DNA of 64,000 nt from Dimorphilus gyrociliatus. Lineage: Eukaryota; Animalia; Annelida. The notes below the pieces were generated by a model. The model was not told the DNA's origin and did no database searches. It saw nothing but the letters and a program-made list of their open reading frames with translations. Both the position numbers and the translations under genes were made by a program. Numbering within the stretch: the first letter of the stretch is position 1; each line of letters opens with the position of its first letter. The DNA lies in the NCBI GenBank assembly GCA_904063045.1, contig CAJFCJ010000002.1, positions 4,373,645 through 4,437,644 of the forward strand, in the 5' to 3' direction. Below are positions 16,252 to 22,265 of the stretch, in pieces.

Positions 16252-17229
16252 CTATTTATCTTTTTTCTTTATATATGCCTGTCTGAAAAAATTGGCAAAC
16301 AACACCATCATTATTATGCAATATCCAGCTACAGACATAAGTAGAAATTTAGGAAATTTACAATCAGACATTGTAGCTGTGCACATTTTAACAAATACTA
16401 AACAAAATTGTAGCATTTGAATTTTAGTAATATGTCTTTTAAAGGTAAGATATTTTTTGAAAGCTGGTCCAGCTGCAGATAATGTATAGTAAAAGTACAT
16501 AAGTGCATGGACGAATGAGTTTACTGCTGGTGGTCCAAACGACTCGCCACCTGGCACGTATTGAATAGCTACCCACCAAAGAACAGCCATTGATGAATGA
16601 TGGAAGACATGTAGAAAGGTAATTTGTCTATTATTTTTTCGAATTATGAAGAATAACGTGTCGGTGTATTCGAAGAATTTTGAAATATAATAGATGTAAT
16701 TGATTCTGGCTAGCTGTAGAGAAAGTAAAAAAAAATGTATATTAAATAATAACATATTAAAATAAAGAGTTTAAAATATTTCATTTGCTATTTGCCTACA
16801 TGAAATCAATAACTGCTATTCTTCAAATTCATTCAACTTTAATCGCCTTGTTCTTTCAGTAATATGATTCAATATTCAAGTTGTATACTATTATCATACA
16901 ACAAAGTATCTTACCCTATAATTTAATTCGTTGTCATCTTTGCTAACTTCTTGACAAATCCAGTTCCATTCGGGTCTAAATATTGATGTCACCAAAAATT
17001 CGTATACCATGTAACAGGAAAGACATACACATGTTATGTTGTAAATTATAAGGAGCTTGTTAACTCTTAACGCCTTCCTAGATTCCATAAATTTGGGTCC
17101 ATAATATACCATTGCTAAATACAAAAATGACATGGTCAATAAGCTATTAAAACTCGTTAATGGCCAATTTTCTAATCGAGTATTTTTATTTTCTTGGTGT
17201 ATTTTTTGGAGCCAGTTAAGGAACAACAT
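16252..17229 (-). CDS. ELOVL fatty-acid elongase (paralog A), about 258 aa. Exons 17229-16915, 16713-16252
   Basis: All four ELO motifs: SKFFEYTDT, LHVFHH, NSFVHALMYFYY, TKIQMLQ; C-terminal dilysine KKKDK. Donor AGG|GTAAGA, acceptor ctacag|CTA. Confidence 0.93.
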
Positions 17230-17391: not shown

Positions 17392-18437
17392 ATGAATGTT
17401 TTTACCAGAAAAATTACAGATTTTAGGGAATTTTACGACTGGGCTCTCACAAGAGCAGGTACATATTGTTACTTTTCTACTCTTTCTATTCTTGACGTAT
17501 TCATTAAACTGTTGCTATCGCTACTTTTCATCAAAAACGTTGTCGTCTGCAAAAAAAGCCGACAGAGTTTTTGTTCTTAACTACGATATGTAACATAAAT
17601 AGAGGAATGGTCATGTTTGTTTATTGTACCAGTACAAATTTATAGTTGATTAAACATATAGAATAGAAAGTCGAAATACTATCTGCAATAAAGTTTTATT
17701 TAACAGATAAGAGAGTTGAAAAATGGCTTTTAATGGACTCATTTACTCCCACTCTTTTGCTTACTCTTGGTTATTTAATGATCACTCAGCTCGGGCCGAT
17801 AGTCATGAAGAATCGTAAAGCCTTAGAGCTTCGCCCTCTGTTGATTGTTTATAACTTTGTTTTAATACTCATTAATTTACATATTTGTACTGAAATCTTT
17901 TCGGCAAGCTCAAATTTAAATTATAGCTATTCATGTCAGCGAGTTTCATACACAAATCACCCTGAAGAGCTTCGTATAGCCCGGGCTATATGGTGGTTCT
18001 ACTTTTCTAAATTATTAGAATTCGGTGATACTTTTTTATTTGTTCTACGGAAGAAAAACAATCAAATATCTTTTTTACATGTTTATCATCATGCAACGAT
18101 GTTCCCACTTTGGTGGATTGGTGTGAAGTGGGTAGCAGGTGGACAGAGTTTTCTTGGCCCAATGATTAATTCATTTGTTCATGTCGTTATGTATACGTAT
18201 TACGGTTTGTCAAGTTTTGGACCCAAAGTTAGAAAGTATTTGGGATGGAAGAAGTATTTAACGATTTTGCAACTACTTCAATTTTACACTGGAATGATTT
18301 ATGGTATCCAGTCCATTTATTTTCAGTGTGACTATCCTATGTGGATGCAGTGGGCGTCGCTTGCGTATGGCGTGACAATAATTGCGCTATTCCTCAATTT
18401 CTATCATAAAGCTTATATCAAAAAGAAGAAACAATAG
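17392..18437 (+). CDS. ELOVL4: ELOVL4-like very-long-chain fatty-acid elongase (paralog B), about 265 aa. Exons 17392-17458, 17707-18437
   Basis: RA|DKRVEKWLLM N-terminus, SKLLEFGDT, LHVYHH, WWIGVKWVAGGQSF, NSFVHVVMYTYY, KKYLTILQLLQF, terminal KKKKQ. These features resemble ELOVL4; the ortholog assignment needs a tree. Confidence 0.88.
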
Positions 18438-18631: not shown

Positions 18632-21600
18632 TTAAGTTTTAGTAGTGGCACAATTTAATTTCATACAAGCTTTAGTCAACGGATGAAAGAGGATAAGAGT
18701 TGTTATTAGTATCGCTGTAAGAAAGAACCAAAAGAAAAGTCTATCGAAAACTTCTGCCATTCTTTTCCAATCAGCGCTGAAATCTTCTTCAGAATCTTTA
18801 ATAAAACCTTCTTCTTCCATGGTATGTCTTGCAATTCTTTCCCCAATTTTCTCTAAAGTTATACCGTTCACCGTCGACCTTCTTTTATCCTTCTTATAAG
18901 ATGACATACACATACACCTTCCCATGTAGTCGATAATGAGAGTTTTTGCCCAAGATGGTACTGGCCGATCTGAGATATAGTGTAAGTTAAGGACAAAAAC
19001 CGTCAAAACCATGGAGAGAGTCGTAATTGCCATGGTCACTGTTAGATAAATTCCCAGTAGAGGTATGTGATCAGATGTCTTTGGAATGTTTCCAGCCACA
19101 TTTAGTAAAAAGATTCGAAAAGAGAGAAGCACAACAACGCCTATCTGAACCTGTTTAAGTATAAGTGACAAAATTTAATAGAGAACAGCAGCAAAGAGTT
19201 AAATACTCTTGGACGAGACTAACCTTCTGATTTGGCGTACAAAAGAAAACAGAAAGTAAAAGAACGGAAGTCATAATACTAGGAAGGATAACATTCAGAA
19301 CGTAAAATGTATGTCTCCTCCTTAAGTAAACCTTAAATTCAACGTTGGAGAATTTTTCATTCGGACAACATTCGTAATTGAATTCGTTGCGAACTGCAGA
19401 TGTTGTAAAAATTTCCCATTCGCCATTTGTTTTATAGCTATCTAAATTAACGACTGATGTTGAAGTTGTCAAATTCATTTTAGATGTGTGATAACTCCAG
19501 GCGCCAAAAACCAAGGCGCAAACTTGTTCGTCAAAAGGATAGTATGTAATGTCGATTTCACACATTGTCTGAAAGTAACTAAGAAGCTATAATAAATCTA
19601 GCACTTTTATTAAAATAATTTGATTATGCGTTTTCTAGTTACTTTAAAAACTCCCCCTGGCTCCCAATGAACTTGTCCAATGCTTGATATAGATGCTCTG
19701 AAAGCCTTGTAATCTTCATACAGTTTTTCGGCTCCATTAATTACAGCAAACTCCGGACGCCAAAGGCGATCCGCCTCAACAATCATATCAGATGCATTAT
19801 TAAATTTTGTAGAATTCCAAACGAGACGTTCATCTATCCATTCTACAATTAGTAGACCCGTAGTTGTGAATACCTGACTTCGAACATCTAAATCTTTAAT
19901 ATGCATCAGTGAAAATTGGATATCAACTGTGACGGTATTGGCAGAATCGATGACTGGGCGGGCTGTTCGAAAGATTAGAGAGTGATGAAACTTGTGTTGG
20001 AAAGGGGTGAACGCCTATTGACCCATATATATTACTTTATATATATATACATATATATATTCTATTTGTATAAACTGACAAAAATGTCAAAGAAGTCTAT
20101 AGAAAGGGAAAAAAAATTTATTTTTTGAAAGATTATTTTTGCTGTAGAAGGACTGTCAGCAAGAAAATGAAAAAAATTTTCCTCTCCTTGTTACAAAGCA
20201 TGACGCAAACGTTTGTGAAGTTTGATGAACGTTCGATAATCGTTTTCCTAATGTATTCGGCAAGACAGCTACCGAATTAGCAAGGGAATTGCCAAGCTGT
20301 CGAAGGGAAATGTATGTGACAATCAGTTTCAGAGCTTATCAAAACTATTGAAAATGTTTCAGAAGGCTTATAAACAATATTTAAAACTTAAGTAGGTTTT
20401 TAATAAATTTACGTTTCGTTTTAAATTTATAGGGTATTAAAATATTCGCCAAATCAATTAATCAATTACTAGGAAACGTCCTTTTTCAATTTATCACCTA
20501 CGTAAAGGCTAAAGGGATAGGCTTTGCTGTCGAGCTCTTTTTCTACAATCATGTAAAACAATTTAAGCGTTACTTTTCACCTTTATTCTGAGAAATAAGG
20601 ATAGCTGAACAAGTTTATGAAAATGTATTAATTTACACTTTATGTTGGTCATTTAATATAAATATTTAATTGCTAAGAAAAGATATCCTATTCATGCTAT
20701 TACTGATACTAATTTAAGGAAGGAATCAATAACCTAATTACTATTAGAATTTAGTCTTTTTCCTACATCTTTTTTAAACGTATTTTCCAGTTGCATAAAT
20801 AATCTCCTTGTAGAGAGCTTTATCATCACTTTGTCTCTATTTTCCAGTATTAAATTAACTTCATTTCACTTGTCTAAGAATATCATTTATACATAAAAAT
20901 AATACAAAGTTATTTTAGTTGACATGCATTGTAAATTTCAAATGATAGGAATGTAAATTTGGCTAATTAGATTTCATCATGATAAAGAATTCGTGCTTTG
21001 CGGTTATTGATGTAAATGTTGCTTTTTATTTGATATTATTTAAGGATTTCAATAAATAAGTAGTTGTCTGGAGAACTTATCGGATGCTGAAGAACATAGA
21101 TCTGAAGTTAATTTTTTTTACGCCACAAAAGTCTTAACAGATTAAACTGAAACGAAAGGAAACTTCTCTTTTGAGAAAGTGTTTTACTTTTTGGTAATTT
21201 ATTATTTGAGAGGGATATTGTTTTAATCTTCTCGCCTATACTTCGTAAAACGTTAACGTTGAGTGATTTCTCTAGACTCACAATAGAGTACATCTAGAAA
21301 TAGCTGTCGAAACCTTGCCTAGAAGACGTTCTTTTTTTCAGTCGACAGGCTTAATGGTTTTTGTGGAAGGGGGTGGAAACTATAAAAGTGAATAAAGAAC
21401 ACAACATTCCCAAGAAATTAACAGTACTTTTAAATAAATTTTAGGAGAAAAGTTCAGGAGGAATGATTACTTTCTTAATTAGCAAAATGTAATATTTGAC
21501 ATTTGCAGCAAGTAAAAAAGTATCCACTGTTAAATAACATGTACAAACGTTACAAGAAACTTCTTTACTTTTATAGGACATTACTGAAAGCTTATATGGC

Positions 21601-22265
21601 TTAAATATATTTTGTTTTGATAATAGAGTCTAGAAATATCTTTCGATTATTGTAATCCATAATAGCTTGCTGTCCGAGTCTCTTACAAACGAGTTAATAG
21701 GAAGAGAAAGATATGAAAAATGTGACAAAAGGGTCATAAGAATATGTCGAATTTTTAGTTAATTGTTAATGTAACAATTTATCATATAACATCGGTACTA
21801 CTGCTTTGGAAACGATAATAAAAACTTCACTAGAAAATTAAATGTCACACATTGGTCTTGTTATTCGGTGATGAAATCAGGACGAAAAAAATCAATATAG
21901 GCTTAAAGCACGTAAAATAGGTTGAAAACATTTAACGAGGGAGATAGTACGAGAAGGGTTGAAGATGATGAGCCAAGAAATTGCTTGTAAAGCGTGGTCT
22001 TTATTCAATAGATTCTTAATTGTTTATCGAATATTGAGAAGAGACTAGAAATAACAAAGACAAAAACTATACAACTTACCGGAAGGGTTATAATCCTTAA
22101 AAAGGTTTATTAAAAGTCTCTCTTCATCACTTAAATTCCTTGTTGCTGCACCTGTACATGAAATAAAAGCAGGAAATGCCGAATTATTGTTTAATTAGTC
22201 TATTAACTTCTCAACAAACAGGGGTAAGTGATCAAAGCCATTAGTAGCTGAGACAATATCAGCAT
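18632..22265 (-). CDS. Cys-loop ligand-gated ion channel, alpha-type nicotinic acetylcholine receptor-like subunit, about 437 aa. Exons 22265-22208, 22151-22080, 19962-19643, 19568-19224, 19150-18632
   Basis: Signal peptide MLILSQLLMALIT..., EERLLINLFKDYNPSARPV, Cys-loop CEIDITYYPFDEQVC, vicinal YECC, four TMs, DWKRMAEVFDRLF before M4. All splice phases agree; the first exon is the least certain. Confidence 0.92.

Follow-up and report, generated by a model that had tools for sequence, protein, structure and literature searches.

A nicotinic-type channel gene of Dimorphilus gyrociliatus with an unusual pore shared by its annelid relatives

The 64,000-nucleotide stretch of the annelid Dimorphilus gyrociliatus genome analyzed here (contig CAJFCJ010000002.1, positions 4,373,645 to 4,437,644 of the forward strand; hereafter the window) carries on its minus strand, at 18632-22265, a real and intact five-exon gene, Dimorphilus gyrociliatus DgyrCDS1922, the product of which is a 437-amino-acid subunit of the nicotinic acetylcholine receptor (nAChR) type. 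The charge selectivity of such channels is usually read from a Glu at position -1' of the second transmembrane helix, M2 (cation), or from a Pro-Ala-Arg motif (anion), and here a deeply conserved natural family fits neither. Judging from the alignments and the tree described below, this odd pore is no quirk of DgyrCDS1922 but the invariant hallmark of an entire annelid clade, one that comprises three or more old subunit types; the identity of the gene and its membership of that clade, taken alone, we regard as very nearly certain. We propose that this clade gene with its re-engineered pore contributes to heteromeric channels that would be anion-preferring or poorly selective, a statement to which, taken as a whole, we assign a probability of about 0.5.

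Results

The M1-M2 junction

On the minus strand the protein reads FFCTPNQK at 19247-19224, where the coding sequence is interrupted by an intron (19223-19151), and resumes at 19150-19091 with the pore helix:

19091-19150, minus strand: M2 positions 1' to 20', VQIGVVVLLSFRIFLLNVAG, from translation and alignments

The codons at three of the positions discussed below are CAG for Q-1' (19229-19227), AAG for K0' (19226-19224) and CGA for R12' (19117-19115). When the protein is aligned with HMMER to the solved alpha3, alpha4 and alpha7 chains, a gap of two residues falls in the M1-M2 linker, and the same alignments pair the Q with E-1', the K with K0' and the R with T12'. The original prediction, made from the letters of this DNA, had placed an nAChR-like subunit at 19090-19250, and both the Pfam domains and the best alignment of the last exon, to solved human alpha3, alpha4, alpha6 and alpha7, bear this out. 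The two-residue linker deletion that it described is the HMMER gap, with which the annotated junction agrees, and the residues that it listed, Q-1', Q2', V6', R12', N17' and G20', are all present, with the prime numbering correct by the HMMER alignment.

The junction as it had been read is also the junction of the three annotated isoforms, DgyrCDS1922, DgyrCDS1923 and DgyrCDS1924, and an unspliced reading through the intron, the fourth of the gene, runs into a stop codon. The short linker stands in one unbroken open reading frame (ORF) in P0001, which lies on a 9-kb Logan contig of unknown type and is ~98% identical to the paralogue DgyrCDS8593, and likewise within a single uninterrupted ORF in P0003, an unnamed relative on a 926-kb contig. 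A linker of equal length is found in P0025, a complete relative of 593 amino acids on a 2.3-kb contig of a JGI sample, which is consistent with an mRNA. As the annotated records and the uninterrupted ORFs of the relatives have the same short linker, the M1-M2 junction is not a splicing artefact.

The acceptor of intron 4 is a tandem one (19145-19156, minus strand, aaacag/GTTCAG/ATA), and use of the second AG, 6 nt downstream, would drop V1' and Q2' in frame. This second AG is used by none of the three annotated isoforms, and the residues that it would remove, V1' and 2' (Q or H), are conserved across the family.

Charge in and around the pore

A Glu at the border of M2 is linked to cation selectivity and its replacement by Pro-Ala to anion selectivity (PMC4055736), and the main determinants of selectivity and conductance lie at the cytoplasmic end of M2 (PMC5715906). 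In DgyrCDS1922 the -1' acid of cation pores is replaced by Gln 264 and the acidic 20' by Gly 285, and the linker, C-T-P-N, has no acid, the two deleted residues being ones that normally include an Asp. The anion motif (Pro -2', Ala -1', Arg or Lys 0', with a linker one residue longer) is absent as well, as the corresponding residues read P(-3') N(-2') Q(-1') K(0'). No acidic residue is found from -7' to 26', and the net charge from -7' to 27' is +2 in DgyrCDS1922, with almost every clade member at +1 to +2, as against -1 to -4 in canonical nAChR relatives and 0 in two hagfish delta-like subunits. The earlier claim that the pore carries neither E-1' nor the P-A-R motif stands for DgyrCDS1922 itself, whereas for the family it is less clear-cut, since most relatives read P-(A/G/S)-Q-K and Pro-Ala often directly precedes Q-1', one position out of register.

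On an ideal helical wheel Arg 12' lies ~88 degrees off the lumen-facing stripe, and its flank meets the Ser 10'/Asn 17' flank of the neighboring M2. The clade alignments show no conserved acidic partner for Arg 12' in M1, M2 or M3.

An annelid clade defined by its pore

Relatives were gathered by an exhaustive HMMER search with the last exon and by two word searches. Named members of the clade are four genes of Dimorphilus (DgyrCDS1922, DgyrCDS8593, DgyrCDS5352 and DgyrCDS13725), three each of Capitella and Helobdella, two each of Ridgeia, Lamellibrachia and the orthonectid Intoshia, and a Paralvinella sequence; the signature is present too in unnamed metagenomic, Logan and ENA sequences. Each genome among the species sampled yielded 2-4 clade genes. 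Residue frequencies, counted in a 20-member clade alignment, are as follows:

Position -3': Pro in 19 of 20
Position -1': Gln in 18 of 20
Position 0': Lys in 20 of 20
Position 2': Gln in 10 and His in 10 of 20
Position 9': Leu in 20 of 20
Position 10': Ser in 20 of 20
Position 12': Arg in 20 of 20
Position 17': Asn in 16 of 20
Position 20': Asp in 14 and Gly in 4 of 20

Position 6' is Val or Ala throughout the clade and the M1-M2 linker is a two-residue turn. The sole residue private to DgyrCDS1922 is N-2', its G20' being shared within its orthologue group, of which four members have it. Among 130 fetched proteins with a recognizable M2, 44 have R12', none of them with an acidic -1' (41 have Q), and 83 of the 86 that lack R12' have E or D at -1'.

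The proteins with the signature form one clade (SH-aLRT 100), and since its support stays at 99 when the columns from the end of M1 through M2 are removed, the tree is not circular. The phylogeny that the original prediction had called for as a check was obtained in part: it gives a single clade, nested within cationic nAChRs, from a tree that does not include the molluscan and flatworm nicotinic chloride channels. DgyrCDS1922 groups with DgyrCDS13725, Capitella 146658 and 152663, Helobdella 173437 and Ridgeia 159, the first three being the rows nearest to it. The sister group is also annelid. Two of its members, Helobdella 94890 and Paralvinella 177, combine a full-length linker with an ordinary GEK pore; a third, Owenia fusiformis 059 (P0059, P0156), has a full-length linker and SGK, with Gly -1', Gln 2' and Asn 12'. 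Owenia is an early-branching annelid, and it is conceivable that the pore of its 059 protein represents an intermediate state toward the R12' pore.

A word search restricted to M1-M3 found the signature in no mollusc (many annotated genomes) and in no other phylum, many phyla being thinly sampled; the next best matches beyond the clade in this search are canonical mite subunits with 53% identity. The clade is apparently restricted to annelids, the orthonectid Intoshia included. Intoshia linei, the genome and nervous system of which are drastically reduced, retains two members (P0169, P0076), and one of these, of 610 amino acids, is named EF-hand domain-containing in UniRef and may be a fused gene model. 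The only genuine relative outside the clade seen with a basic residue inside M2 is P0102, which has Arg 17' and a normal GEK filter.

A search of the literature yielded no paper describing this pore signature or clade and nothing relevant on an annelid acetylcholine (ACh)-gated chloride channel. A lophotrochozoan nAChR tree of 649 sequences included D. gyrociliatus, and its main text singles out neither the clade nor the pore (PMC10338036). Nor is the clade treated in the papers on the Alpo receptors of Alvinella. The clade is a previously undescribed, database-visible variant of nicotinic-type channels.

Conservation along the protein

DgyrCDS1922 was compared with its Capitella, Helobdella and Ridgeia orthologues, and the identities by region are:

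M1: 79-92% identity
Linker and M2: 88-96% identity
M2-M3 loop and M3: 76-95% identity
Extracellular domain: 59-69% identity
Cytoplasmic loop: 19-26% identity

Between species, identity reaches 76-100% in the transmembrane helices as against 19-34% in the cytoplasmic loop. By these identities the protein is under strong purifying selection and the pore is its best-kept part. As the pore is the best conserved region, a decaying gene is ruled out, and it can be argued that the unusual pore itself is the selected feature. We give next to no chance to the explanation that the locus is an artefact or a decaying gene, be it through wrong splicing of the model, through misassembly or as a pseudogene with an M2 made odd by relaxed constraint. 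The truncation of two of the three annotated isoforms at the N-terminus would be in line with it, and yet the frame is intact across five exons, the GT-AG introns of 56-74 nt are typical of the genome, a linker of equal length and the M2 recur in at least seven named annelid genera, in places without an intron, and the conservation pattern is that of purifying selection. The pseudogene or artefact reading was rejected on the grounds of conservation and intact gene structure.

Fold, conserved core and ligand site

Pfam detects both domains of the family in one chain of DgyrCDS1922, Neur_chan_LBD with 4.2e-52 (residues 29-235) and Neur_chan_memb with 1.2e-26. In an AlphaFold2 model built from a 40-sequence alignment (mean pLDDT 86, pTM 0.73) the M1 helix spans residues 237-259 and is followed by a two-residue turn, C260-T261, and by the M2 helix at 262-286; further helices are predicted at 295-323 and 390-436, and at residues 28-37 in the part encoded by exon 2. 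All of the 50 Foldseek matches listed are nAChR chains, with TM-scores of 0.67-0.85, and a protein atlas search returned generic nAChR clusters only.

The canonical core is kept, namely the Cys-loop (C153-EIDITYYPFDEQV-C167, with 13 residues between the cysteines), the M1 proline, Leu 9', the four helices and the partners of the 0'-M4 salt bridge. This salt bridge is present in all structures of eukaryotic pentameric ligand-gated ion channels (PMC8024024); of its predicted partners, K265 never varies and D401, which lies in FDRLFF, is conserved in no fewer than 90% of the 40 sequences of the alignment.

The loops of the ligand site were compared with those of alpha3 and of canonical invertebrate relatives. 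Vicinal cysteines, YECC at 215-218, mark the protein as an alpha-type subunit, and this Cys-Cys pair is absent from the paralogues DgyrCDS13725 and DgyrCDS5352. The aromatic box for ACh is incomplete: Ile replaces the Tyr of loop A (WRPEFAVINGAEK) and Leu the Trp of loop D, while the Trp of loop B and the first Tyr of loop C are retained and the second loop C Tyr is a Phe. As the loop A and loop D changes are common to the whole clade and to its sister group, they predate the change of the pore. With two of the five aromatic positions of the box thus aliphatic, the agonist may be something other than ACh, or ACh may be bound in another way, and for DgyrCDS1922 the word 'nicotinic' is, on this comparison, best taken to denote ancestry and not a demonstrated ligand.

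Gene structure and neighborhood

The window is AT-rich (G+C 32.5%). Exons were searched one by one, and the database record of DgyrCDS1922 was then matched to each exon translation separately. The translations are the consecutive blocks 1-19, 21-43, 45-150, 151-265 and 266-437 of this record (P0238), exons 1 and 2 having been located 2.1 kb upstream of exon 3 by local tblastn with relatives as queries. The parts of the gene are:

22208-22265, minus strand: exon 1, with the start codon, the signal peptide, residues 1-19 and the first base of codon 20; donor GTTAAT
22080-22151, minus strand: exon 2, with the N-terminal alpha-helix SDEERLLINLFKDYNPS, residues 21-43; donor GTAAGT
19963-22079, minus strand: intron 2, 2117 nt, phase 1, GTAAGT...GAACAG
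19643-19962, minus strand: exon 3, residues 45-150, the first half of the ligand-binding domain (Pfam Neur_chan_LBD, 2.4e-15)
19224-19568, minus strand: exon 4, residues 151-265 (Pfam Neur_chan_LBD, 2.9e-20), with the Cys-loop, the loop B Trp (GAWSY), loop C YECC, M1 and the short linker up to Q-1' and K0'
19151-19223, minus strand: intron 4, 73 nt, phase 0, GTTAGT...AAACAG, between K0' and V1'
18632-19150, minus strand: exon 5, residues 266-437 (Pfam Neur_chan_memb, 1.2e-24), with M2, M3, a short cytoplasmic loop (~70 residues), the acidic stretch before M4, M4 itself including the Asp of FDRLFF, and the stop codon

The four introns measure 56, 2117, 74 and 73 nt and all are GT-AG. The short ones suit this genome, as its median intron is 66 bp (PMC7854359). 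Intron 2 is unusually long for it and contains an AT-rich simple repeat at 20020-20072; long introns of D. gyrociliatus often carry open-chromatin peaks (PMC7854359). A search of this intron from 20073 to 22079 against Rfam gave no match.

The shorter annotated products, DgyrCDS1923 and DgyrCDS1924 (P0161 and P0237; window 18632-19906), start at the internal methionines M63 and M152, and the second of them (M152) would be without most of the ligand-binding domain. They may reflect alternative transcription starts or be by-products of annotation. The Logan ORF fragments P0239 and P0240 match the C-terminal part of DgyrCDS1922 (window ~18632-19040) with an identity of at least 90% and differ from it by several changes in the cytoplasmic loop and by a C-terminus that reads ...CATSANV in place of ...CATTKT, which suggests that a second strain or a sibling species of Dimorphilus is present in public reads.

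Convergent with the channel gene lies an intronless ELO/ELOVL fatty-acid elongase gene (17733-18437, plus strand; Pfam ELO, 3.7e-66), the stop codon of which is ~195 bp from the stop of the channel gene at 18632. A second ELO-like ORF is found at 16894-17229 on the minus strand.

Discussion

The pore that DgyrCDS1922 shares with its clade suggests a channel unlike a normal sodium- and calcium-passing nicotinic receptor. We propose that the native receptor would be a heteropentamer of several old paralogue types, which is probable because each annelid genome keeps several such types, with and without the Cys-Cys pair. In such a receptor DgyrCDS1922 would contribute none of the acidic rings at -4', -1' and 20' and would add an un-neutralised Arg 12', and with the acidic rings missing and no membrane acid to neutralize the arginine, the pore would be electropositive or neutral. 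Cymes and Grosman (PNAS 2016) reportedly found that once the charges of the first turn are neutral, other ionised side chains lining the pore control selectivity. On this principle, a pore that is anion-preferring or weakly selective, and of low conductance, is judged somewhat likelier than a classical Na+/Ca2+ nicotinic pore. The anion-leaning pore, taken alone, we hold tentatively, at a little under even odds. The original prediction had envisaged altered selectivity or gating, or an obligate heteromeric subunit, and as far as the predicted protein goes this fits the findings.

Several features weigh against such a pore, and part of them speak at once for a cation-selective channel. The vestibule acid after loop A, a cation-type feature, is retained (NGAE in DgyrCDS1922, NGAD in relatives), the pre-M4 stretch of DgyrCDS1922 is strongly acidic (EEEGFIKDSEEDFSADW), and as 14 of 20 clade members have Asp 20', the outer ring of a heteromer would be partly acidic. 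It may also be that Arg 12' is hidden between adjacent M2 helices, where it would influence gating and not permeation. Neutralizing -1' by itself is not known to invert the selectivity of alpha7 or muscle receptors, and in the Torpedo receptor one subunit naturally has Gln at this position. Finally, the canonical anion motif is absent, and the linker is shorter where that of anion channels is one residue longer.

Taken together, the retained acids make a case for a nicotinic-type channel that has remained cation-selective. In such a channel Arg 12' would serve structure or gating from a buried position between M2 helices, hydrogen-bonded for example to Ser 10' or Asn 17' of the neighbor, cation preference would come from the outer vestibule acid, the Asp 20' of partner subunits and the acidic portals, and Gln -1' would only lower conductance and Ca2+ permeability. 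The placement of Arg 12' on an ideal helix, ~88 degrees off the lumen axis and opposite the Ser 10'/Asn 17' flank, agrees with this, and so does the nesting of the clade inside the cationic nAChRs. We nevertheless consider a cation channel rather unlikely. The cytoplasmic end, to which the literature assigns most of the control over selectivity, is without an acidic ring, and compared to canonical nAChR relatives the pore segment has a net charge of opposite sign. Complete burial of Arg 12' would be costly, since no conserved membrane-embedded acid in M1, M2 or M3 pairs with it. Moreover, R12' and the missing -1' acid invariably go together, as if the electrostatics of the pore had changed in concert.

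The subunit could also be silent or modulatory, or part of a non-conducting receptor, tuning the gating, trafficking or ligand binding of its partners or signaling without current. The rings at 6' (Val), 9' (Leu), 13' (Ile) and 16' (Leu) are hydrophobic and make up a long hydrophobic stretch, the aromatic box has lost part of its residues, every genome contains several paralogue types side by side, and the annelid receptors Alpo1, Alpo2 and Alpo4 gave no currents with any compound tested (PMC4801368; PMC10338036). However, M2 is the most conserved part of the protein (88-96% between species), which argues for selection on the pore itself. The protein also retains the gate at Leu 9', the M2-M3 loop and both K0' and its M4 Asp partner. 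All subunit types of the clade share one pore, so that the clade holds no 'normal' conducting partner. We regard a silent role as quite improbable.

A more specific form of the anion-leaning proposal is that the R12' clade is an annelid chloride channel gated by ACh or by a choline-like ligand, which we consider doubtful. If true, it would be a third, independent route from cationic to anionic nicotinic channels, in which a ring of arginines half-way along the pore, together with a neutral -1' and a shorter linker, takes the place of Pro-Ala, and it would give a molecular identity to the inhibitory cholinergic synapses classically described in leeches and other annelids.

Whichever ions pass, nature has run an experiment in this family: it could show which pore charges govern selectivity when the ring at -1' is neutral, and in what way the cytoplasmic mouth is shaped by a tight hairpin. 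The clade is kept in two very reduced annelid genomes, those of Dimorphilus and Intoshia, and this retention points to what may be an essential role. The clade is also a candidate receptor for a fast form of neurotransmission in annelids.

Comparison with known channels

The best matches of DgyrCDS1922 in both sequence and fold are human alpha3, alpha4 and alpha7 and muscle alpha1. With these canonical alphas it shares the 13-residue Cys-loop, the Cys pair of loop C, the loop B Trp, the M1 proline, Leu 9', the K0'-M4 Asp pair and the four helices. Unlike them it has neither Glu -1' nor an acid at -4' or 20', its linker is two residues shorter, and it carries Arg 12', Asn 17', Gln 2', Val 6', the loop A Ile and the loop D Leu.

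The anionic nAChR subunits of Lymnaea and SmACC-1 and SmACC-2 of Schistosoma are likewise of nAChR descent and have likewise lost the Glu at the M2 border (PMC4055736). Both they and the annelid clade come from lophotrochozoan or platyhelminth lineages in which ACh can inhibit. Compared by description, these ACh-gated chloride channels have Pro-Ala and no mid-M2 arginine is described for them, whereas DgyrCDS1922 has Gln -1', a proline at -3' and a shortened linker.

The orphan receptors of Alvinella resemble the clade in being annelid nicotinic-type proteins with no known agonist, and Alpo1 is also without a negative charge at -1' (PMC4801368). Alpo4 differs in having Glu -1', Asp 20' and a constriction at Met 16' (PMC10338036). 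Alpo1 and Alpo4 belong to poorly populated lineages, the closest homologues being 36-37% identical (PMC4801368; PMC10338036); the R12' clade, by contrast, has many members, with 60-90% identity between species, and so constitutes a separate family.

The chemotactile receptors of cephalopods are lophotrochozoan nAChR derivatives too, have lost the signature residues for binding ACh and are not gated by it (as cited in PMC10338036). Unlike these nAChR-like sensors of poorly soluble molecules, the R12' clade is small and old. The chemotactile receptors are cation channels that stem from a tandem expansion specific to cephalopods. A further parallel is His 11' of the bacterial homologue GLIC, a naturally occurring ionisable residue half-way along M2 that, like Arg 12', lies off the lumen-facing stripe. 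It differs in that it is titratable, faces within its own subunit and belongs to a proton-gated cation channel, whereas Arg 12' is permanently charged and is conserved together with a neutral -1'.

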